Below, piece after piece: positions 3,740 through 23,151 of a stretch of 64,000 bases of DNA; position 1 is the first letter of the stretch; each line of letters opens with the position of its first letter. A model generated the notes under the pieces. The model did not search any database. It saw only the letters and a list, made by a program, of their open reading frames with translations, and was not told where the DNA came from. The stretch lies in the sequence record MW349129.1, one strand, 5' to 3'. A program made the position numbers and the translations under genes.

Positions 3740-4792
3740 ATGTCCAAATACGATTTAACTTTATATCATCATTTAAAACAAGAAGTAAAACCATGTAGAT
3801 TAACAACTTCACAGGATGAGACAATGATACGTTGTCCTTTCTGTGGAGATTCTAAAAAGTCTAAAAGTTCAACACATTTATATATACAAAATAGAACTCC
3901 ATTTAAATATTTCTGCCAAAGATGTAATGCTTCTGGAGTTATGAGTAATAAAGTTTTAGCTATGTTAAATAGTGGTAATGTAGAAATAAATAGTTATATT
4001 AACAATCAATATAATGAATATATTTCTAATATGAATAAAAAATATGGTAAATCTTTTATCAATAGAAATACAAAAGAATTAAAATACTACCCAAATAAAT
4101 ATACTGATTTAGAAATAAGCAAGATTAATTATATTAATGAAAGATTGGGTATTAACATAGATGAGAAGGATATTGAATTATATAAGATTATTTTGAATAT
4201 AGAAGACTTTTATAAGAATAATGAATTTGATATAGATAATCAATATCAAATAAATAATCTTAATAATAATTATTTTAGTTATATGTTGAATGATAAGAAC
4301 ACTATTAACTGTAGGTTAATGAATAGCGATACATTTGGGACTAATGGGAAGAAACACTTTAAACAAAAAATATTTAAGAATTTAGCTGATGAAAGTACTA
4401 GATTTTATTCAATTAAAAATGAATTAAGATTGGATAGAAGAGTGTATAACATTCATATAGCTGAAGGATTCTTTGATATATTGGGGATATTTAATCATGT
4501 GTATAATAAAGAAATAAATGACAATGATATATTTATAGCTAATAACGGAAAAGGTTATAAATTTGTATTAAATTATCTAAACAGTTTAGGTATACTTAAT
4601 ATGAATATAAATATTTATTCTGATAGAGATGTTAAAATTACTGATTATCGCAGTAAGAGAATGCTCGGTAATTCGCTACCAGTAATTTTAAATGATGCTA
4701 ATATATATTATAATGAATTTGAAAATGAAAAAGATTTTGGAGTAACAAAAGATAAAATAAAATTATCAGAACCAATTAAGTTTAATCAATAA
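3740..4792 (+). CDS. DNA primase (zinc finger plus TOPRIM)
   Basis: CPFCGDS...CQRC zinc-binding domain; IAEGFFD and DRD TOPRIM acidic motifs. Confidence 0.85.
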   Translation: MSKYDLTLYHHLKQEVKPCRLTTSQDETMIRCPFCGDSKKSKSSTHLYIQNRTPFKYFCQRCNASGVMSNKVLAMLNSGNVEINSYINNQYNEYISNMNKKYGKSFINRNTKELKYYPNKYTDLEISKINYINERLGINIDEKDIELYKIILNIEDFYKNNEFDIDNQYQINNLNNNYFSYMLNDKNTINCRLMNSDTFGTNGKKHFKQKIFKNLADESTRFYSIKNELRLDRRVYNIHIAEGFFDILGIFNHVYNKEINDNDIFIANNGKGYKFVLNYLNSLGILNMNINIYSDRDVKITDYRSKRMLGNSLPVILNDANIYYNEFENEKDFGVTKDKIKLSEPIKFNQ

Positions 4793-6884: not shown

Positions 6885-7130
6885 ATGGTATTTAATATTT
6901 TAATAGCATTAGCATATGAGGCACTTATTTCTTTAGGATTAGGAGTTTCAGCTTTTTATATATCTTTATTTTTATTAAGATATGTAAAAAATAATATTAT
7001 CAAGAAAGAAATTAAGAATGAAAATAGGAAGTTATTGTATCTTTCATTATTAATAGTTATAATATTTATGTCAATAAAATCATACGTTGATATAAAATTA
7101 AGTATTATAGAACAAATATTAAAAATGTAG
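6885..7130 (+). CDS. Small membrane protein
   Basis: 81 aa, two hydrophobic helices, GGAGG RBS. Confidence 0.65.
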   Translation: MVFNILIALAYEALISLGLGVSAFYISLFLLRYVKNNIIKKEIKNENRKLLYLSLLIVIIFMSIKSYVDIKLSIIEQILKM

Positions 7131-7134
7131 AAAA

Positions 7135-7167
7135 GCGTAACATAAGACATTTTTAATATATATTATA
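7135..7167 (+). promoter_or_regulatory. Early-type promoter GCGTAAC-N15-TATATATTATA
   Basis: Exact bipartite motif, followed by ATGAAG and a hairpin. Confidence 0.7.
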
Positions 7168-7224
7168 ATAATGAAGATATAATAATATCAATTATATCTT
7201 TAATAAAATAAAGGAGAAATTAAA

Positions 7225-7503
7225 ATGACTGAATTTGAAAATGAAACTAAAGTATCAAAAGAGGAGAAGAAGATTAAAAGATTTATTGATCAAGGTATTG
7301 ATAATTTGTCTGATACCGTAGGAGAAAGTATTGAAGGTATTCCGTTATCTTTAACTGATTATTTTCCTAAAATAAAGAAATTAATTATTAAATTAATTGA
7401 TCGAGAAGAAAGTGATGAAATTAAAATGACAAACGAATCAGGTGAAATATTTAAATTTAATAGAACTTCACATGATATTTATTTAACAGCAATTAAATTT
7501 TAA
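7225..7503 (+). CDS. Hypothetical early protein
   Basis: 92 aa with AAGGAG RBS. Confidence 0.65.
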   Translation: MTEFENETKVSKEEKKIKRFIDQGIDNLSDTVGESIEGIPLSLTDYFPKIKKLIIKLIDREESDEIKMTNESGEIFKFNRTSHDIYLTAIKF

Positions 7504-7540
7504 TGAAAATTTTCTATGAACCAACAATAAAATTAAAGGT

Positions 7541-8173
7541 GTGGTATGTATGATTAAAGTCAATGAACTATTAACACAAATTAAAGAAATAAAAACGAAT
7601 GACAGTTATACGAAATTAATAAACGAGTACAAAGATATGGTTAATAATGGTAGTATATCTTATAAACCATTAAAAGATTATTATAATTTCATTATATATT
7701 ATTTAGAAAAATCCAGATATCAAGCATTGAAATCTAACAACTTTAATGAATCTAATTTAAATATCAAATTATTGATAGAAGATCTAATGACTTTAAACAA
7801 TATTGTTAAATCTGATATTTTTGATACTAAAGAAGTAATCAGATCTACTGGTTTTAAATTAACAAATGGAAGTACATTTGATAGAGTTATCAAATACATT
7901 AAAGATAAACTGGATGAATTAATTATAGAGTTACATTCAGATAATTATAAATATCAAAATATCTATTTTTATCTACCTGAACTAAATAATCTATTGCATA
8001 ATACAATTCATATAGAACGTGTTTTAGATAAAAATAAGGATAATGTAGATATTATTAATATAAATAAATATAATTTATTTGAAATGATGCCTTGTAATAA
8101 CATTATAGATAAAGATGAATTTTATATTATGGTTAATCATTTATATGATTTAGGATCTTTAGAAAAAGCGTAA
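7541..8173 (+). CDS. Hypothetical protein
   Basis: 210 aa ORF. Confidence 0.6.
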   Translation: MVCMIKVNELLTQIKEIKTNDSYTKLINEYKDMVNNGSISYKPLKDYYNFIIYYLEKSRYQALKSNNFNESNLNIKLLIEDLMTLNNIVKSDIFDTKEVIRSTGFKLTNGSTFDRVIKYIKDKLDELIIELHSDNYKYQNIYFYLPELNNLLHNTIHIERVLDKNKDNVDIININKYNLFEMMPCNNIIDKDEFYIMVNHLYDLGSLEKA

Positions 8174-8200
8174 CGTGTAATAAAATAAGTATATATTATA
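8168..8200 (+). promoter_or_regulatory. Early-type promoter GCGTAAC-N15-TATATATTATA
   Basis: Exact bipartite motif. Confidence 0.7.
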
Positions 8201-8259
8201 ATAATGAAGATAGATAGAATATTATCTATCTTTAATAAAAATCAAATGGAGGAATTGAA

Positions 8260-8430
8260 ATGAAAAAGAATTTATTATTGAAAAGTGTAGTAGGATTTGG
8301 ATTAGGTATTGTGTTAGGAGTTGTAAGTAACAAGATTGACGACATGATTATGCAAAAGGAAATGGAAAGACAAATTTTTAAAAAAGCTTCAGAAATGACT
8401 TTTGAACATCCGTTCGCTAACTTAAAGTAA
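8260..8430 (+). CDS. Small membrane protein (56 aa), paralog of 9611-9778
   Basis: Hand-translated MKKNLLLKSVVGFGLGIVLGVVSNKIDD...HPFANLK; GGAGG RBS; missing from the ORF track. Confidence 0.8.
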   Translation: MKKNLLLKSVVGFGLGIVLGVVSNKIDDMIMQKEMERQIFKKASEMTFEHPFANLK

Positions 8431-8457
8431 AGGAGGAAAGAGGATAATTGTTTTAAA

Positions 8458-8510
8458 AGACCTAATGAATATAGATCAATTTCATTAGGTCTATAATTTT
8501 CTATGATCCA
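8458..8510 (+). ncRNA. Repeated structured element (putative H-type pseudoknot), copy 1
   Basis: Stem AGACCTAATGAA/TTCATTAGGTCT; loop TAGATCA can pair with downstream TGATCCA (one mismatch). Confidence 0.55.
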
Positions 8511-8533
8511 ACAATAAAAAGGAGCTAAAATCA

Positions 8534-8845
8534 ATGAATAACAAAACTAAATTAGCAGAATTAAGAAAAGAATTAAGAATCGTATATTCTGATATACGAT
8601 TAAGTAAAACAAGTACTATAGTGGAAAGACTCCACAAGAAAAAAGAAAGACTAATTAAAGAAATTAATGAACTAGTAGAAAAAGATCAAAATGTTTTTGA
8701 TAGAGAAAAACATATAGCAAAAGTCAAAGATCAGAATAATGATAATATTCACAAAGGATCAGATGAATTTTCTAAGGCAGGCAGACTTCATAGAAAATAT
8801 CAAAAACATGATAAACACAGAATATTTAATAATTTAACACAATAA
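8534..8845 (+). CDS. Basic coiled-coil protein, paralog of 10828-11148
   Basis: Shares KGS(D/N)xxxKAGRLH motif with the paralog. Confidence 0.7.
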   Translation: MNNKTKLAELRKELRIVYSDIRLSKTSTIVERLHKKKERLIKEINELVEKDQNVFDREKHIAKVKDQNNDNIHKGSDEFSKAGRLHRKYQKHDKHRIFNNLTQ

Positions 8846-8860
8846 TAAAGGAGAATCATT

Positions 8861-9529
8861 ATGCTAAAAGTAAATAAAAATAATCTGAAGGAATCAAAAT
8901 TAGATTTTACAGGAATTAAAGACTCTTATCAAAAAGGAATTGATTATATTGATTTTGTATATGTAGGAGAACAGAAGCACATCATTAAGGGTAATGAATT
9001 TGTTAAAATATTTATGAACTCAGAAAGAGAAAAAGCCACTGAAAAGTATAATGGTAAATTAAGCAGATTGGATATTATTTCGGTTAATAACTCTTTAAAA
9101 TTCTTAATGAAAATTATGGAAAGTGAAATACTTAATCCTAGGAATATTGTAGAAGAGAATACTATTTCATTACTAAATAAAGAAGAATGGAAATTAACTT
9201 ATAAACACATTATAAGATTATGTAATGATATTATTCAACTTAATATTGAAGATCCAGATCAACAAAATAGCTTGTATTATTTTTCTATGATCCGAGAAAA
9301 ATTAAAGAACAGATATGATAAAACAGAGAAAATCAATAATATTAAGGATCTCAGAGAATTGATTGTCGAGTTATTTTATATGGATATTGATATTGAATAT
9401 TTTGAAGATAAAAATTATGTAACATGGGATAACTCATTAATAGAAGAATATTTTGGAAAAGATATCGACATTATTGTAGACCAATTGATTGTTAGTAAAT
9501 CAGTTGAATTTGAAAAGCGTAACGTATAG
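8861..9529 (+). CDS. Hypothetical protein
   Basis: 222 aa with AAGGAG RBS. Confidence 0.65.
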   Translation: MLKVNKNNLKESKLDFTGIKDSYQKGIDYIDFVYVGEQKHIIKGNEFVKIFMNSEREKATEKYNGKLSRLDIISVNNSLKFLMKIMESEILNPRNIVEENTISLLNKEEWKLTYKHIIRLCNDIIQLNIEDPDQQNSLYYFSMIREKLKNRYDKTEKINNIKDLRELIVELFYMDIDIEYFEDKNYVTWDNSLIEEYFGKDIDIIVDQLIVSKSVEFEKRNV

Positions 9530-9549
9530 TAAAATAAGTATATATTATA
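9517..9549 (+). promoter_or_regulatory. Early-type promoter GCGTAAC-N15-TATATATTATA
   Basis: Exact bipartite motif. Confidence 0.7.
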
Positions 9550-9610
9550 ATTATGAAGAAAGAGATTATCATTAACTCTTTCTAATAAAAATCATAGAGG
9601 AGAAATTAAA

Positions 9611-9778
9611 ATGAAAAAATTATTATTAAAAAGTGCAGTAGGATTTGGATTCGGAATTGTGTTAGGCGTAGTAAGTAATAAGATTGATGACTTAATCATG
9701 GAGAAAGAAATGGAAAGACAAATCTTCAAAAGAGCTTCAGAAATAACTATTCAACATCCATTTAGTAATTTAAAATAA
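9611..9778 (+). CDS. Small membrane protein (55 aa), paralog of 8260-8430
   Basis: Hand-translated MKKLLLKSAVGFGFGIVLGVVSNKIDD...HPFSNLK; GAGGAG RBS. Confidence 0.8.
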   Translation: MKKLLLKSAVGFGFGIVLGVVSNKIDDLIMEKEMERQIFKRASEITIQHPFSNLK

Positions 9779-9804
9779 AGGAGGAAAGAGGATAATCGAT
9801 TTAA

Positions 9805-9860
9805 AGACTTAATGAATATAATGGATCAAGTTCATTAAGTCTATAATTTTCTATGATCCA
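9805..9860 (+). ncRNA. Repeated structured element (putative H-type pseudoknot), copy 2
   Basis: S1 AGACTTAATGAA/TTCATTAAGTCT; S2 TGGATCA/TGATCCA (7 bp). Confidence 0.6.
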
Positions 9861-9896
9861 AACTAAAAAAAAACAAAAAGAAAAGGATGATTTATT

Positions 9897-10406
9897 ATGA
9901 TGAAAAAATTTAACCAAGAAATGATCAACAAAATTCAAGAGGCTATGTTACCTTTATTAAAAGAAGAATTAGGAAATGAAATTGAAACAGTAGAATTTAA
10001 AGTAGAAGATAGATTAGCAATTAATTCACTTTTCGTAACAGCACAACAAGAAATGGCAGCGAAATTAACTAAAGGTGGATTTAACTTAGATAAGACAGTA
10101 TTCATCTTCTCGGACAAAGCTCCAGAATACAAACCTGTAGTTTCTATATACCAATCAATAAATAAAGTAACTTCTTTAGGATCAAAAAGAAGATTTGTTA
10201 AAAGTATTTTAGAAACAATCGCACATGAATATCGTCATGCATACCAATTCATCAATGGACAAATTGATGTTGAGAAATTCATCAGAGGAGAATATAGCTA
10301 CCAAAGTGCTTCTCAATATAAAGCTCTTGAGACTGAGAAAGATGCATTTGCATTCCAAGCAGAATTCTCTAAGAAGTATTTCAAGCAAGTTTTAAAAGCA
10401 TTATAA
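9897..10406 (+). CDS. Zincin-like metallopeptidase
   Basis: HEYRHAYQ (HExxH) with a downstream ExDA motif (ETEKDAFAF). Confidence 0.7.
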   Translation: MMKKFNQEMINKIQEAMLPLLKEELGNEIETVEFKVEDRLAINSLFVTAQQEMAAKLTKGGFNLDKTVFIFSDKAPEYKPVVSIYQSINKVTSLGSKRRFVKSILETIAHEYRHAYQFINGQIDVEKFIRGEYSYQSASQYKALETEKDAFAFQAEFSKKYFKQVLKAL

Positions 10407-10443
10407 TATTTATAACAAATAAAATTTAAATGGAGGGAATATT

Positions 10444-10539
10444 ATGAAAATCACTATCATTAAAGAAAATAAAAAAACTTCTTATAGAATTAGTCTTAAA
10501 ACTATTCTATTTGAAAGAAAATTAATTAAAAAATTATAA
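10444..10539 (+). CDS. Small basic peptide (31 aa)
   Basis: Hand-translated MKITIIKENKKTSYRISLKTILFERKLIKKL; GGAGG RBS. Confidence 0.5.
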   Translation: MKITIIKENKKTSYRISLKTILFERKLIKKL

Positions 10540-10566
10540 GGAGATGAAAAGGATACTGTTTTAAAG

Positions 10567-10619
10567 AGACTTAATGGACATGGATCAAGTTCATTAAGTC
10601 TATAATTTTCTATGATCCA
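10567..10619 (+). ncRNA. Repeated structured element (putative H-type pseudoknot), copy 3
   Basis: S1 AGACTTAATGGA/TTCATTAAGTCT with one G-U pair; S2 TGGATCA/TGATCCA. Confidence 0.6.
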
Positions 10620-10657
10620 AACAAAAAATAAAATTGAAATTAAAAGGAGAAATTAAA

Positions 10658-10840
10658 ATGTTAGAATTATTAAATGGAATTGAATTTGTAAACGAAAAGG
10701 AAATTAACGAAGAGAAAGAATTATTAATCAATTATTCAGATGAAGCAAGATATCCATCTGAGCAGACTTACAGAGAAATAGATTCAATTATCGAAAGTTT
10801 CGACAATACAGCTTTCGGATTAAGAAAATGGGGAGTGTAA
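10658..10840 (+). CDS. Small acidic hypothetical protein
   Basis: ATG at 10658 follows AAGGAG; 60 aa. Confidence 0.65.
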   Translation: MLELLNGIEFVNEKEINEEKELLINYSDEARYPSEQTYREIDSIIESFDNTAFGLRKWGV

Positions 10841-11148
10841 TTAAAATGGTCAGAGAAGAAAAAATTAAACAATTAAAAAAAGAGTTACAAGTAATATTAG
10901 ATAAAGAAATTAGATCTAGAAATAAATCAATTTCAAATAGAGATTTTGAAAAGAAATTAGATTTAATGAAACAGATAGACAAGTTAAAATTTGACATTAG
11001 ATCTGAAAGATATTTAAGAAATGTCAAAAAGAATAAAATTAAGGAATATAAAGGCAGTAATGATTATGCAAAAGCTGGAAGATTACATCAATCTTTCCAA
11101 AGTAAAGAAGAACACAAAATATGGAAAGAAGAATTAGTAATTCAATAA
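10828..11148 (+). CDS. Basic coiled-coil protein, paralog of 8534-8845
   Basis: KGSNDYAKAGRLHQSFQ motif. Confidence 0.7.
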   Translation: MGSVIKMVREEKIKQLKKELQVILDKEIRSRNKSISNRDFEKKLDLMKQIDKLKFDIRSERYLRNVKKNKIKEYKGSNDYAKAGRLHQSFQSKEEHKIWKEELVIQ

Positions 11149-11153
11149 TATAA

Positions 11154-11405
11154 ATGGAGGAATTTATTATGAAAATATTAAGATTAAAAACAGAATGGGC
11201 ATTAATATTAGGTATGATATTAGGAACAGTTGCTGGGATTGCTTCACAAGATTTCTTTGTGGGAGCATCTCTTACATCTCTAATAACATTAATAACAGTA
11301 GCTATTAATTATTCAATTGGAGATAAGAGAAAAAGTGATATTCAAAAATCTAATAAATCATATTACGTTAGAGTGAATAGTGAGTCAGGAGATGTTTTCA
11401 AATAA
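11154..11405 (+). CDS. Small two-TM membrane protein
   Basis: Hydrophobic; INYSIGDKRK resembles INYMIGEIRR in the next gene. Confidence 0.7.
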   Translation: MEEFIMKILRLKTEWALILGMILGTVAGIASQDFFVGASLTSLITLITVAINYSIGDKRKSDIQKSNKSYYVRVNSESGDVFK

Positions 11406-11605
11406 TGGAAAAAGAAAAGAAATTATTAAAAATAAAACCTTGGATATTGTTTTGGTTTACATTTATATTAGGTTTTATTATAGGTGAATTATTTGGTTAT
11501 GTGGAAGGAAAATCAATATTTGTAGGTGTAATTTTATCTGGAACATGTTTATCCATTAACTACATGATTGGTGAAATTAGAAGAAATGGATTAAAAAGTG
11601 ATTAG
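11405..11605 (+). CDS. Small two-TM membrane protein, paralog of the preceding gene
   Basis: Hydrophobic; INYMIGEIRR. Confidence 0.7.
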   Translation: MEKEKKLLKIKPWILFWFTFILGFIIGELFGYVEGKSIFVGVILSGTCLSINYMIGEIRRNGLKSD

Positions 11606-11650
11606 AATTAAATTTAGATTATTAATTAAATAATAAGGAGGTGCTTGGAT

Positions 11651-11758
11651 ATGTTATTAGAAAACTTCATTACAATTATCGTGTTACTTGGTTTAATGAA
11701 ATTTACAGGTTGTTTCAAATTTATGAAAGAAATCTGGTCTAACAAAGGTAACAAATAA
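11651..11758 (+). CDS. Small membrane peptide (35 aa)
   Basis: Hand-translated MLLENFITIIVLLGLMKFTGCFKFMKEIWSNKGNK; AAGGAGGT RBS. Confidence 0.6.
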   Translation: MLLENFITIIVLLGLMKFTGCFKFMKEIWSNKGNK

Positions 11759-11765
11759 CAATAAA

Positions 11766-11794
11766 AGAGTGGATTATTTTCTATGATCCACTCT
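11766..11794 (+). ncRNA. Truncated copy of the repeated element (S2 hairpin with TTTTCTA loop)
   Basis: AGAGTGGATTA-TTTTCTA-TGATCCACTCT. Confidence 0.55.
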
Positions 11795-11834
11795 ACATAT
11801 TTAAATTAAAAAAAAACGAAAAGAGGAAATTAAA

Positions 11835-12377
11835 ATGAAAAAATTATTAATGGTATTAGCATCAATCGCTTTAATCGCAGTTATCGGAGCAGCAGGAATA
11901 TTTGGTTATAGTAGTTTTAAAAGCTTAACAGTCAATAAAGAAGATAGTAAGACTGAAGAAGTATCTAAAAAGAAAGAAGACAAAAAAGAAAAGAAAGAAC
12001 AAGAAGAATCAGATAATGTAGAAGTAAATCAACAACAAGATCAAACTCAAGAAGTAAATAATAATGAACAACAAAATCAAACTCAAGAAGTAAATAATAA
12101 TGAACAACAAAATCAAACTACAGAAGATAGTAATACAAATGTACAACAAAATCAACAACAAGAACCAGTAGTTGAAGAGAAAACTCAAGTAACAGATAAT
12201 GAAGGTAATAATATAGATGATATGGATTCAGAAGAATTTATTTCTAAATATACAGAAGGAATGGATGAAGAAGAAGCTCAAACAGTAAAAGACATGGCTG
12301 AAGAAGATTCAGGATATGAAGATTTCTTACGTGGACAAGTAGAAGATAGACAAAACGGACAAGGCGGAAATTACTAA
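11835..12377 (+). CDS. N-terminally anchored Q/N/E-rich surface protein, paralog 1
   Basis: Signal anchor MKKLL...IGAAGIFGYSSFK followed by low-complexity sequence. Confidence 0.75.
   Translation: MKKLLMVLASIALIAVIGAAGIFGYSSFKSLTVNKEDSKTEEVSKKKEDKKEKKEQEESDNVEVNQQQDQTQEVNNNEQQNQTQEVNNNEQQNQTTEDSNTNVQQNQQQEPVVEEKTQVTDNEGNNIDDMDSEEFISKYTEGMDEEEAQTVKDMAEEDSGYEDFLRGQVEDRQNGQGGNY
12042..12119 (+). repeat. 36-bp in-frame tandem repeat (QTQEVNNNEQQN), two full copies plus a partial
   Basis: CAAACTCAAGAAGTAAATAATAATGAACAACAAAAT repeated exactly. Confidence 0.9.
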
Positions 12378-12400
12378 TAAGAAGAAAAGAGTGAAATGAA

Positions 12401-12868
12401 ATGAAAAAAATCTTAAGTATTTTAACAGCGATAGCTTTAATCACAGTTATCGGAGCAGCAGGAGTATTCGGCTATAGTAGTTTTAAAGAATTAAATAATA
12501 GTAAAGATAGTCATAAAGTTGAAACAAGTAAAAAACAAAAAGAATCAGATGATAAAAATAACACTCAACAACAAGAACAAAATACATCAAAAGAAAACAA
12601 CAATATCCAACAACAATCAAATGAAGATAGCCTAACAGAAAATATGGATGAAGAATATAAAAAACAACAGGAAATGTATGAAAGGCAATCAAAAGGTGAA
12701 GCTCCAGAACCGGGTTCTATAATTGACAACCCACCAAAAAATTATGAAACTCCAGAAAAAGATAAAATAACTATAAGTGAGTTAAGAGAAGTTTTAGGCG
12801 ATGATATTGATGAAAGTAAAATTGATGAAGCAAAAGCGTCTGGCGAATATATTAATGATGAAGAATAA
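12401..12868 (+). CDS. N-terminally anchored Q/N/E-rich surface protein, paralog 2
   Basis: IGAAGVFGYSSFK anchor, similar at DNA level to paralog 1. Confidence 0.75.
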   Translation: MKKILSILTAIALITVIGAAGVFGYSSFKELNNSKDSHKVETSKKQKESDDKNNTQQQEQNTSKENNNIQQQSNEDSLTENMDEEYKKQQEMYERQSKGEAPEPGSIIDNPPKNYETPEKDKITISELREVLGDDIDESKIDEAKASGEYINDEE

Positions 12869-14423: not shown

Positions 14424-14434
14424 TATATATTATA
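14424..14434 (+). promoter_or_regulatory. Early-type promoter core TATATATTATA
   Basis: Motif followed by a hairpin, upstream of 14491. Confidence 0.5.
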
Positions 14435-15936: not shown

Positions 15937-16437
15937 ATGTTAAAAAATAAAAATATTGAAATTAACCAAGATATTATTGATCAAGAATTAATGAAAACAA
16001 AATATATGGAAGAGGCGATGTTAAAAGTGTTAAATCAAGATTTAGTAATCAATTTAAGATTTTTAAAAGATAATCTACTATCTGACTGGGAGTTTGAAAA
16101 TAATACAGCTGAATTTAAAGAAATAGAAAAATTCTATGATCCGTCATTAAAAATAAGATTAATTTTTAAAGTTAATAATGAAAAAGAAATCAAGTATACA
16201 CTTAATGAAGACGTTCAAGATATGTTAGAGAATTTCATGATTAAGAAAGCTGACGATGAAAGAGCTTGTCAAATTATTAAATCTGTTATTGAGTATGAAT
16301 TCTTTAAGAAAGAAAATAAAAAGGGTCATGATCTTGATATGGATACAATAGATTTACTAATGGGTAAAGTTAACGAATTAAAAATTAAATACAATATCAG
16401 TAATAAACAAGCTAAGAAATTATATATAGCATTTTAA
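15937..16437 (+). CDS. Hypothetical protein
   Basis: 166 aa ORF. Confidence 0.6.
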   Translation: MLKNKNIEINQDIIDQELMKTKYMEEAMLKVLNQDLVINLRFLKDNLLSDWEFENNTAEFKEIEKFYDPSLKIRLIFKVNNEKEIKYTLNEDVQDMLENFMIKKADDERACQIIKSVIEYEFFKKENKKGHDLDMDTIDLLMGKVNELKIKYNISNKQAKKLYIAF

Positions 16438-22491: not shown

Positions 22492-23151
22492 ATGAGTAAT
22501 TATTTATATCGTTTTAACAAAAAGAATGTAAATATCTTCTATCATAAAAGGACTAATAATGGTCATAAAATGTTATTTAATAATAGCAATGATAAAGATA
22601 GATCTATATATTTAATAAATACTGATGAAGAAATCAATAATATGGAACTAGTATCTAAATATATTGCTGGAAAAGTATTTGAAACACTAAACCAAGAAAA
22701 TATGAAAATAGTGCATATGGATTTCTTTAATAGTAAATTAGAATTCTTTATAAGTAGATCATCCAAGAATAAATATATAATGAATATGTATTTTAGTTTA
22801 AAAAGTTATAATGATTTAATAGAAAATGAAAAAGAATTTATAGATAGTGTTAATGAACTTAATTTAGACTTTTTAAAATCAGTTTCTTTAGATCAAGACA
22901 ATAATCATATATTGGATATGACATTAATATTTTTAATAGATAAAAATAAAATAGATGAATTTATTAAAAATCTATTTTATATTAATTATATAAAGATAAT
23001 AGAATTTATAATAGATAATATATCTGTATATGCAGATGATTATAAGAAATTTAATGAAGAAATAAATATTCTTTTGGATCATAGAAATTTTATAGAAGAA
23101 ATAACATATAAAGAATATAAAAAGATAATGACGAAAGAGATGTTTATTTAA
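22492..23151 (+). CDS. Hypothetical protein with the shared C-terminal tag
   Basis: Ends IEEITYKEYKKIMTKEMFI. Confidence 0.65.
   Translation: MSNYLYRFNKKNVNIFYHKRTNNGHKMLFNNSNDKDRSIYLINTDEEINNMELVSKYIAGKVFETLNQENMKIVHMDFFNSKLEFFISRSSKNKYIMNMYFSLKSYNDLIENEKEFIDSVNELNLDFLKSVSLDQDNNHILDMTLIFLIDKNKIDEFIKNLFYINYIKIIEFIIDNISVYADDYKKFNEEINILLDHRNFIEEITYKEYKKIMTKEMFI

Follow-up and report, generated by a model that had tools for sequence, protein, structure and literature searches.

The stretch of DNA analyzed here (the window, 64,000 nt) corresponds at 100% identity to bases 1–64000 of Staphylococcus phage Madawaska (MW349129, 265 kb) and raises the question of what is conserved in a short element that recurs between small early genes at 7510–11794: an RNA fold or a sequence. 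In the original prediction, the element was an H-type pseudoknot, in which the loop of a first helix (S1) pairs with a downstream motif to form a second helix (S2). Comparison with related phages gives a different answer. The downstream motif, a 13-nt box, is conserved as an autonomous, strand-specific linear 13-mer that is independent of S2, and both S1 and the hairpin of a fourth copy (c4) are genuine, conserved RNA structures. The element is best explained, tentatively, as a composite cassette for punctuation, built of two modules that can be told apart. A DNA promoter at the 3′ motif, which the original prediction had set against its own pseudoknot, is now the leading, if putative, explanation of the box.

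Phages of the AR9/PBS1/S6 type have uracil-containing DNA that is transcribed by two unusual multisubunit polymerases, and to our knowledge only two promoter classes are known in them; the host polymerase is probably not used by the AR9-like family. Madawaska belongs to the S6/PALS_2/Machias group of jumbo phages, is related to Bacillus phages AR9 and PBS1 and encodes split RNA polymerase subunits of both a virion and a non-virion multisubunit enzyme (compare preprint 10.1101/2020.12.14.422802). The region containing the elements is common to Madawaska and nine relatives. S1 was aligned and its pairs were counted over 19 S1-type copies from 10 genomes, representing 13 distinct sequences, and the box was searched for in the whole Madawaska genome, scanned in pieces.

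Covarying hairpins and an invariant linear box

The copies of the element in the window are:

7510..7523, plus strand: c0, a box without hairpin or partner, carrying one mismatch in Madawaska (TGAACC)
8458..8510, plus strand: c1, S1 at 8458–8492 (12 bp, 11-nt loop), linker ATAA, box at 8497–8509; gene 012 starts at 8534
9805..9860, plus strand: c2, S1 at 9805–9842 (13 bp, 12-nt loop including UGGAUCA), linker ATAA, box at 9847–9859; gene 015 starts at 9897
10567..10619, plus strand: c3, S1 at 10567–10601 (13 bp, 9-nt loop AUGGAUCAA), linker ATAA, box at 10606–10618; gene 016 starts at 10658
11766..11794, plus strand: c4, 11-bp hairpin with loop TTTTCTA, its 3′ arm formed by the box part TGATCC and ACTCT; gene 020 starts at 11835

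The three full copies (8458, 9805 and 10567) and c4 at 11766 lie where they had been placed originally; the degenerate copy reported at 7511 is also present, starting one base earlier. This copy, c0, begins 7 nt past the stop codon of gene 009 and 27 nt ahead of the start of gene 010. Its box is exact in MarsHill, LY01 and PALS_2, and in Machias, PB50 and AH12 it is preceded by another, small hairpin; an upstream complement to the box was looked for at c0 and not found. The copies lie 759–1350 nt from one another and are not tandem. In the cluster, the end of the box is separated from the start codon by 24, 27, 37, 39 or 45 nt. As originally predicted, the element recurs and its 3′ motif, strictly conserved, precedes ribosome-binding sites; the distance to the true ribosome-binding site is 10–33 nt.

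S1 comprises 13 pairs, and 98.8% of the cells in its alignment are paired. Three pairs are altered on both sides (C-G/U-A twice and A-U/U-A once), and no shuffle or slid register approached the covariation of the real alignment; the compensatory C-G/U-A change and the G-U substitution first noticed among the window copies are real and extend across the 10 genomes. The alignment contains 15 G-U cells and zero A-C cells, which identifies S1 as a sense-strand RNA hairpin. Folding energies of S1 in c1–c3 were −14 to −16 kcal/mol (z −2.6 to −4.1), and that of the c4 hairpin was −16.8 kcal/mol (z −5.6). The c4-type hairpin presents UUUUCUA as its loop, as had been described, and is supported by compensatory changes on both sides of three outer pairs and by one-sided changes that preserve pairing: in SA1, the 5′ arm carries A>G and U>C facing the invariant box. 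Without the S1 3′ arm and the linker, c2 and c3 reduce to a c4-type hairpin.

The covariance model of S1 plus box, one of the checks that had been suggested, recovered its 19 training copies at 85–96 bits and no others, the next-best match scoring 36 bits, and it confines full S1-type cassettes to this region. Another suggested check, against Rfam, gave no match at or above the gathering threshold in the whole window and, at 7000–12500 with E up to 1, a single chance-level snoRNA match away from the element.

The box, TTTTCTATGATCC, is followed by a purine in every intergenic copy. Its 13 bases are unchanged in 19/19 S1-type copies and in nearly all other copies in the 10 genomes; the exceptions, all among non-S1 copies, are four with a different base at position 1 and the single change in Madawaska c0. 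Nine exact copies occur in the Madawaska genome (8497, 9281, 9847, 10606, 11777, 89024, 161247 on the minus strand, 178518 on the minus strand and 212284) against ~0.02 expected, and seven of them are intergenic. The window holds eight matches with ≤2 mismatches compared to 2.5 expected, a count reached by 0/100 shuffles.

Beyond the cluster, an exact box at 89024 lies between divergent genes 089 and 090 (RecD-like helicase). It is kept in SA1 and Machias, where the flanks are only 72–80% identical and the spacing differs, and no hairpin, partner or conserved same-strand promoter upstream was found at this site. The exact box of Listeria phage LPJP1 lies between two divergent early promoters and, because of this placement, is probably untranscribed DNA. 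In Bacillus phage Internexus, an exact box precedes GroEL by 36 nt; AR9 lacks an exact copy, and its box at the same GroEL position has 1 mismatch. In the Bacillus phages the box is placed in a late operon, and the specificity for early genes originally proposed does not hold. Exact-pattern scans of IMG/VR and metagenomes returned chance matches and no further S1-type copy, and a literature search for the box letters returned nothing relevant. At 178430–178520, genes 180 (non-virion polymerase specificity subunit) and 181 converge on a canonical bidirectional terminator, with the minus-strand box at 178518 between the gene 181 stop codon and the terminator; this arrangement is kept in SA1, and the box is absent in Machias.

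The box is kept without a pairing partner in at least five contexts, including c0, the 89024 site in three lineages, LPJP1 and Internexus, and no complement to UGAUCC was found ≤60 nt upstream at the 89024 site, in LPJP1, in Internexus or at the AR9 near-copy. Because conserved boxes occur without this complement, the shared feature is the linear sequence and not a fold, and the conserved unit is the 13-mer instead of the proposed core of S2 plus UUUUCUA. An H-type pseudoknot would entail that both helices are kept in evolution; S1 is kept and S2 is not. Four pairs of S2 are invariant, and its two variable columns change solely to non-pairs (G to A in c1 of Madawaska and MarsHill, G to U in c1 of Machias, PB50 and AH12). 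No S2 covariation was detected across the 13 distinct S1-type sequences. The loop heptamer UGGAUCA, said to pair in all three full copies, does so in c2 and c3; the c1 loop reads UAGAUCA and leaves one S2 mismatch. Loop segment GGAUCA varies in 2/6 columns and the stem in 5/13, which is about equal. The isolated S2 duplex is worth −8.3 kcal/mol in c2 and c3, −4.4 kcal/mol in c1 and −1.4 kcal/mol in Machias c1, pseudoknot penalty excluded.

Several features do fit a pseudoknot, namely the 7-nt loop–box complementarity in c2, c3 and their orthologues, the sterically plausible loop lengths of 1, 1 and 11 nt (by reading of the sequence) and the pairing of an upstream GGAUYA with UGAUCC that c4 and the 161247 copy each show independently. 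Weighed against an S2 that changes only by breaking pairs, its modest duplex energies, the partner-less boxes and the lack of an Rfam match, they leave it very unlikely that S1 and S2 together form the functional unit, for example as a protein-binding operator. As a decoy for type III toxin–antitoxin toxins, another role suggested, the element has neither a tandem repeat array nor a toxin-like gene nearby: 0/10 neighboring proteins gave a toxin-like Pfam or PHROG match.

At 161235–161247, an inverted box lies in a hairpin ~20 nt upstream of tRNA-Asn. In S6, a variant of this hairpin has G-U when read on the plus strand and C-A when read on the minus, so the plus-strand RNA probably carries the box complement. 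The loop UAGAAAA is complementary to the c4 loop, and a G+C-rich, possibly structured stretch adjoins. An antisense RNA acting in trans from this copy is unlikely, as the copy is absent in SA1 and BLAST did not recover it in the Machias group, and the box is kept in both.

Most box matches in coding sequences are coincidences, in which FYDP is encoded in frame: by the box at 212284 (endolysin), by a 2-mismatch match at 16130 of the window, by PALS_2 9866 and by the Bacillus BpSp amidase. Two further matches in the window lie within genes:

9281..9293, plus strand: exact box in the coding sequence of gene 013 (open reading frame (ORF) 8861–9529), absent from the original prediction
23076..23088, minus strand: box variant with the first base altered (ATTTCTATGATCC, one mismatch), antisense within gene 039

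The 9281 box occurs in Madawaska and MarsHill only and is probably non-functional; the counterparts of gene 013 in Machias, PB50 and LY01 show no match at ≤2 mismatches.

The box as a candidate start signal

The promoters of AR9 follow two consensus sequences, AAATATATATTAT-N6-G for early and AACA-N6-TA/G for late promoters, with late leaders mostly of 20–40 nt (Lavysh 2017, PMC5312081). The box matches neither, and a variant of an AR9 early or late promoter was rejected on this ground; the late signal AACA-N6-TA is also not consistently found at or after the box. A sigma-70 promoter was rejected as well: the promoter scan calls no site at the element, which has no −35 and no TGn (extended −10). 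By hand, TATAAT is found in c1–c3 without a −35 at 16–18 nt and is absent from c0, c4 and the 89024 site. Three AR9-type early promoters accompany the cluster:

7157..7173, plus strand: AR9-type early (virion polymerase) promoter TATATATTAT-N6-G before gene 009, context outside the element, with a 5′-terminal hairpin after the predicted +1
8190..8206, plus strand: AR9-type early promoter before small gene 011 (repeat family D6)
9539..9555, plus strand: AR9-type early promoter before small gene 014 (repeat family D6)

The early consensus has 31 exact sites genome-wide, including the D6 repeats at 7157, 8190 and 9539. The resulting layout is early promoter, 5′-terminal hairpin, small gene (011 or 014), S1, box and next genes, such that the promoter at 8190 and c1 bracket a putative mini-transcript of ~290 nt, and the promoter at 9539 and c2 bracket a second.

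We tentatively favor reading the element as a cassette resembling the promoter-early stem-loop (PeSL) units of T4-type phages, in which the hairpin would end or stabilize the early mini-transcript that precedes it and the box would provide a minor-class start signal. In the first module, the sense-strand hairpin (S1 in c1–c3 and the c4 hairpin) would end, attenuate or 3′-protect the transcript from the upstream AR9-type early promoter; genes 011 and 014 would each be carried on such a ~290-nt mini-mRNA with a hairpin at both ends. In the second module, the box and its purine would be recognized by sequence rather than as part of a pseudoknot and, at the DNA level, would mark transcription starts as a third, minor class of promoter, used by a phage polymerase or a factor-modified form of it. 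Leaders initiated at the box would measure 24–45 nt for genes 010, 012, 015, 016 and 020, and the box-to-gene spacing is within the usual range of AR9 leaders. A start signal in DNA is favored by the sites in divergent spacers, by the distance from box to gene, by the purine that follows the box and by a box that is kept whatever its RNA context. Being repeated, the unit doubles as a junction for the exchange of gene modules between related phages.

A broader proposition, possible although more doubtful, is that AR9-like jumbo phages infecting Bacillales have a third, hitherto unseen class of transcription signal, represented by the box, which one of their two multisubunit polymerases would read together with an as yet unknown specificity factor. 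If true, a third strictly conserved signal, common to Staphylococcus, Listeria and Bacillus phages and tied to a covarying hairpin, would point to a specificity factor or RNA-handling protein so far unknown, and it would aid in defining which genes are delayed-early in the staphylococcal jumbo phages considered for therapy.

Several observations weigh against the cassette with a start signal. S1 departs from a canonical intrinsic terminator, in which a G+C-rich stem with a loop of 3–8 nt runs directly into U residues: the S1 loop spans 9–12 nt, there are only 3–4 G-C pairs and UUUU starts 5 nt past the stem, and the terminator scan makes no call, by general rules from which those of the phage polymerases may differ. 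The minus-strand box at 178518 has no gene downstream, and a promoter between that stop codon and terminator would yield a short RNA only. In the SA1 copy at 4299, the box lies ~30 nt downstream of an early promoter, where a second promoter would be redundant. We know of no polymerase or factor for a third promoter class. The complementarity of the S1 loop to the box is left unexplained and may be a relic. More weakly, the AR9 near-copy before GroEL belongs to a gene in the late operon, and the AR9 start-site tables list no mapped start at this 1-mismatch copy; because AR9 has no exact box, these tables say little about a promoter role.

Both established promoter classes show further regularities in Madawaska. 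Among predicted early transcripts, counted from the +1 G of TATATATTAT-N6-G, 25/31 open with a stem-loop starting within 5 nt (median z −4.5 against shuffles); those in the window start at 7173, 8206, 9555, 14440, 19477 and 43010 (minus strand). The stem-loop at the 5′ end of early transcripts looks like an end-protective hairpin, and the word 'hairpin' is absent from the main text of the AR9 transcription paper. A further D6 module (AAAGCGTAAC, early promoter and 5′ hairpin) occupies 238371–238810; its gene is followed by an annotated terminator, the 3′ arm of which overlaps a box-like ATATCTATGATCC and then a T run. The late promoter AACA-N6-TA is found 35–45 nt before many structural genes between 67 kb and 204 kb of Madawaska, including sites upstream of genes 082, 087, 099, 153, 158, 186, 190, 197, 198 and 199; the genome paper reported that MEME did not recover a late signal. 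At ~89190–89215, a conserved AACC-N6-TA, one base different from the late promoter, precedes the gene of the RecD-like helicase by ~60–70 nt in Madawaska, SA1 and Machias.

Alternative readings and the gene modules

The main rival, which we consider unlikely, places the box in the transcript: a phage or host protein specific for UUUUCUAUGAUCC would bind or cut it there, making it an operator of translation, a site of processing or a determinant of stability, and the hairpins would modulate access to it or protect new ends, like the RNase III sites between T7 early genes. Consistent with this, 8/9 exact copies are co-oriented with local genes, the hairpins are sense-strand RNA and the sites fall in a 5′ leader (SA1 4299), between cistrons (c0–c4 and the GroEL sites of Internexus and AR9) and in a 3′ untranslated region (UTR; 178518). 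In AR9, expression is also lower past the near-copy, in g228 (42 and 621), than before it, in g229 (153 and 1157). Counted by independent loci, however, orientation is ~3–4 co-oriented versus 2 anti-oriented, and the 89024 and LPJP1 boxes lie between divergent promoters with no conserved upstream promoter on the box strand. In c4, half of the box is locked in the 11-bp stem, whereas it is single-stranded elsewhere, so no single RNA shape is shared, and no RNA-binding protein or nuclease was found adjoining the element. A mini-ORF from the AUG in the box was considered and rejected: only in c2, c3 and Internexus does its end adjoin the next start codon, and it does not in the other copies or S6.

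Control of elongation is an improbable alternative, in which a phage polymerase would read the box in the non-template strand or the nascent RNA, as in ops/RfaH or nut/boxA, and a pause or the loading of a factor would alter read-through of downstream hairpins or terminators. The shortness, invariance, strand specificity and low copy number of the box would suit such a signal, as would its location in leaders and between cistrons of long operons, the copy immediately upstream of a terminator and the three copies within the 4.9 kb that separate the early promoter at 9539 from the one at 14424. The case is argued from analogy alone, though; no NusG- or RfaH-like factor was identified, and the divergent-spacer sites (89024 and LPJP1) would be hard for any elongating polymerase to reach.

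Three paralogous pairs, 010/013 (7550–8173 and 8861–9529), 011/014 (8260–8430 and 9611–9778) and 012/017 (8534–8845 and 10846–11148), indicate that the region grew by tandem module duplication. Genes 011 and 014 encode membrane-like proteins of 55–56 amino acids, and the neighboring proteins gave no informative family matches. Flanks are chimeric at the element in LY01, S6, DC4, PALS_2 and SA1: a c1/c2-type upstream flank is joined to the c3 downstream flank in S6, DC4 and PALS_2, the c0 upstream flank is joined to a c1-like downstream flank in LY01, and the gene 015 module lies behind an early promoter and box in SA1. The repeated cassette explains gene gain and loss in this ORFan-rich early region. 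Gene 015 (9897–10406) has a weak DUF3920 match and an HExxH-like motif (HEYRH), from which its product may be a small metallopeptidase-like protein. Gene 020 contains imperfect direct repeats of 30–36 nt at 12020–12115 that encode a Q/N/E-rich repeat, and its product is secreted or lipoprotein-like.

The same tandem paralogues and chimeric flanks could be read as a recombination scar or mobile repeat without a regulatory role, the box and hairpin serving merely as homology for duplicating and swapping cassettes. We regard this as quite improbable: exchange driven by homology would work without an invariant 13-mer, the box persists where it is single-copy and its flanks have diverged as well as in other genera of phages, and the compensatory changes in S1 and the c4 hairpin amount to selection on structure.

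Least credible is ribosome docking, in which UGAUCC of the box would pair with GGAUCA of 16S rRNA just 5′ of the anti-Shine–Dalgarno while the GGAUCA arms (S1 loop and c4 5′ arm) mimic rRNA and gate access. In Staphylococcus aureus, the 16S segment is GGAUCACCUCCUUU and the bases upstream of CCUCC are accessible for extended pairing (PMC13009471); UGAUCC is an exact complement of GGAUCA as printed there (a lead and not a finding), the duplex is worth −6.7 kcal/mol compared to −7.0 kcal/mol for CCUCC/GGAGG, and the box does precede true ribosome-binding sites by 10–33 nt, but the idea leaves the invariant UUUUCUA half unexplained, the box lies upstream of the Shine–Dalgarno and not between it and the start codon, copies occur in a 3′ UTR and in untranscribed spacers, and a six-base complementarity is readily found post hoc.

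Comparison with known systems

The likeness to ToxI-type antitoxin RNA, a small structured RNA of similar size, was drawn by analogy in the original prediction only; the Madawaska element has no tandem array (~36-nt repeats), no adjacent toxin gene and no supported pseudoknot.

Early RNase III sites of T7 and the SP82 processing site with its 5′ stabilizer are conserved intercistronic hairpins that punctuate polycistronic early RNA and protect its ends. Conserved hairpins between phage early cistrons are common to these systems and Madawaska, whereas the S1 stem (12–13 bp) is short for RNase III and the invariant linear box has no counterpart there. The nut (boxA/boxB) and ops sites are cis-acting, linear, invariant boxes of ~12 nt, some with an adjacent hairpin, in the leaders of long operons. 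They share with the Madawaska element an invariant linear box in few copies per genome, but there is no sequence similarity and no known factor, and order and contexts vary.

The early and late promoters of AR9 come from the same phage family and are likewise short, highly conserved, strand-specific and located 20–45 nt before genes, and arrangements of a terminator followed by a promoter are common in AR9. The box nevertheless differs from both consensus sequences, and AR9 has neither an exact copy nor a start at the near-copy.

The PeSL cassettes of T4-type phages are sites at which modules are exchanged (Arbiol 2010, PMC2839356; Comeau 2014, PMC4122927). Their promoters are of the host sigma-70 type (−35/−10, TTGACA-N17-TATAAT), unlike the Madawaska box with neither a −35 nor an extended −10; of the two PeSL parts, the stem-loop is present here and covaries, and the promoter is a candidate. 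The Madawaska element resembles them as a short composite unit in which a stem-loop is followed by a conserved signal, here a candidate transcription signal, and, like them, it is repeated between the small ORFan genes of a plastic early region whose modules differ between close relatives.

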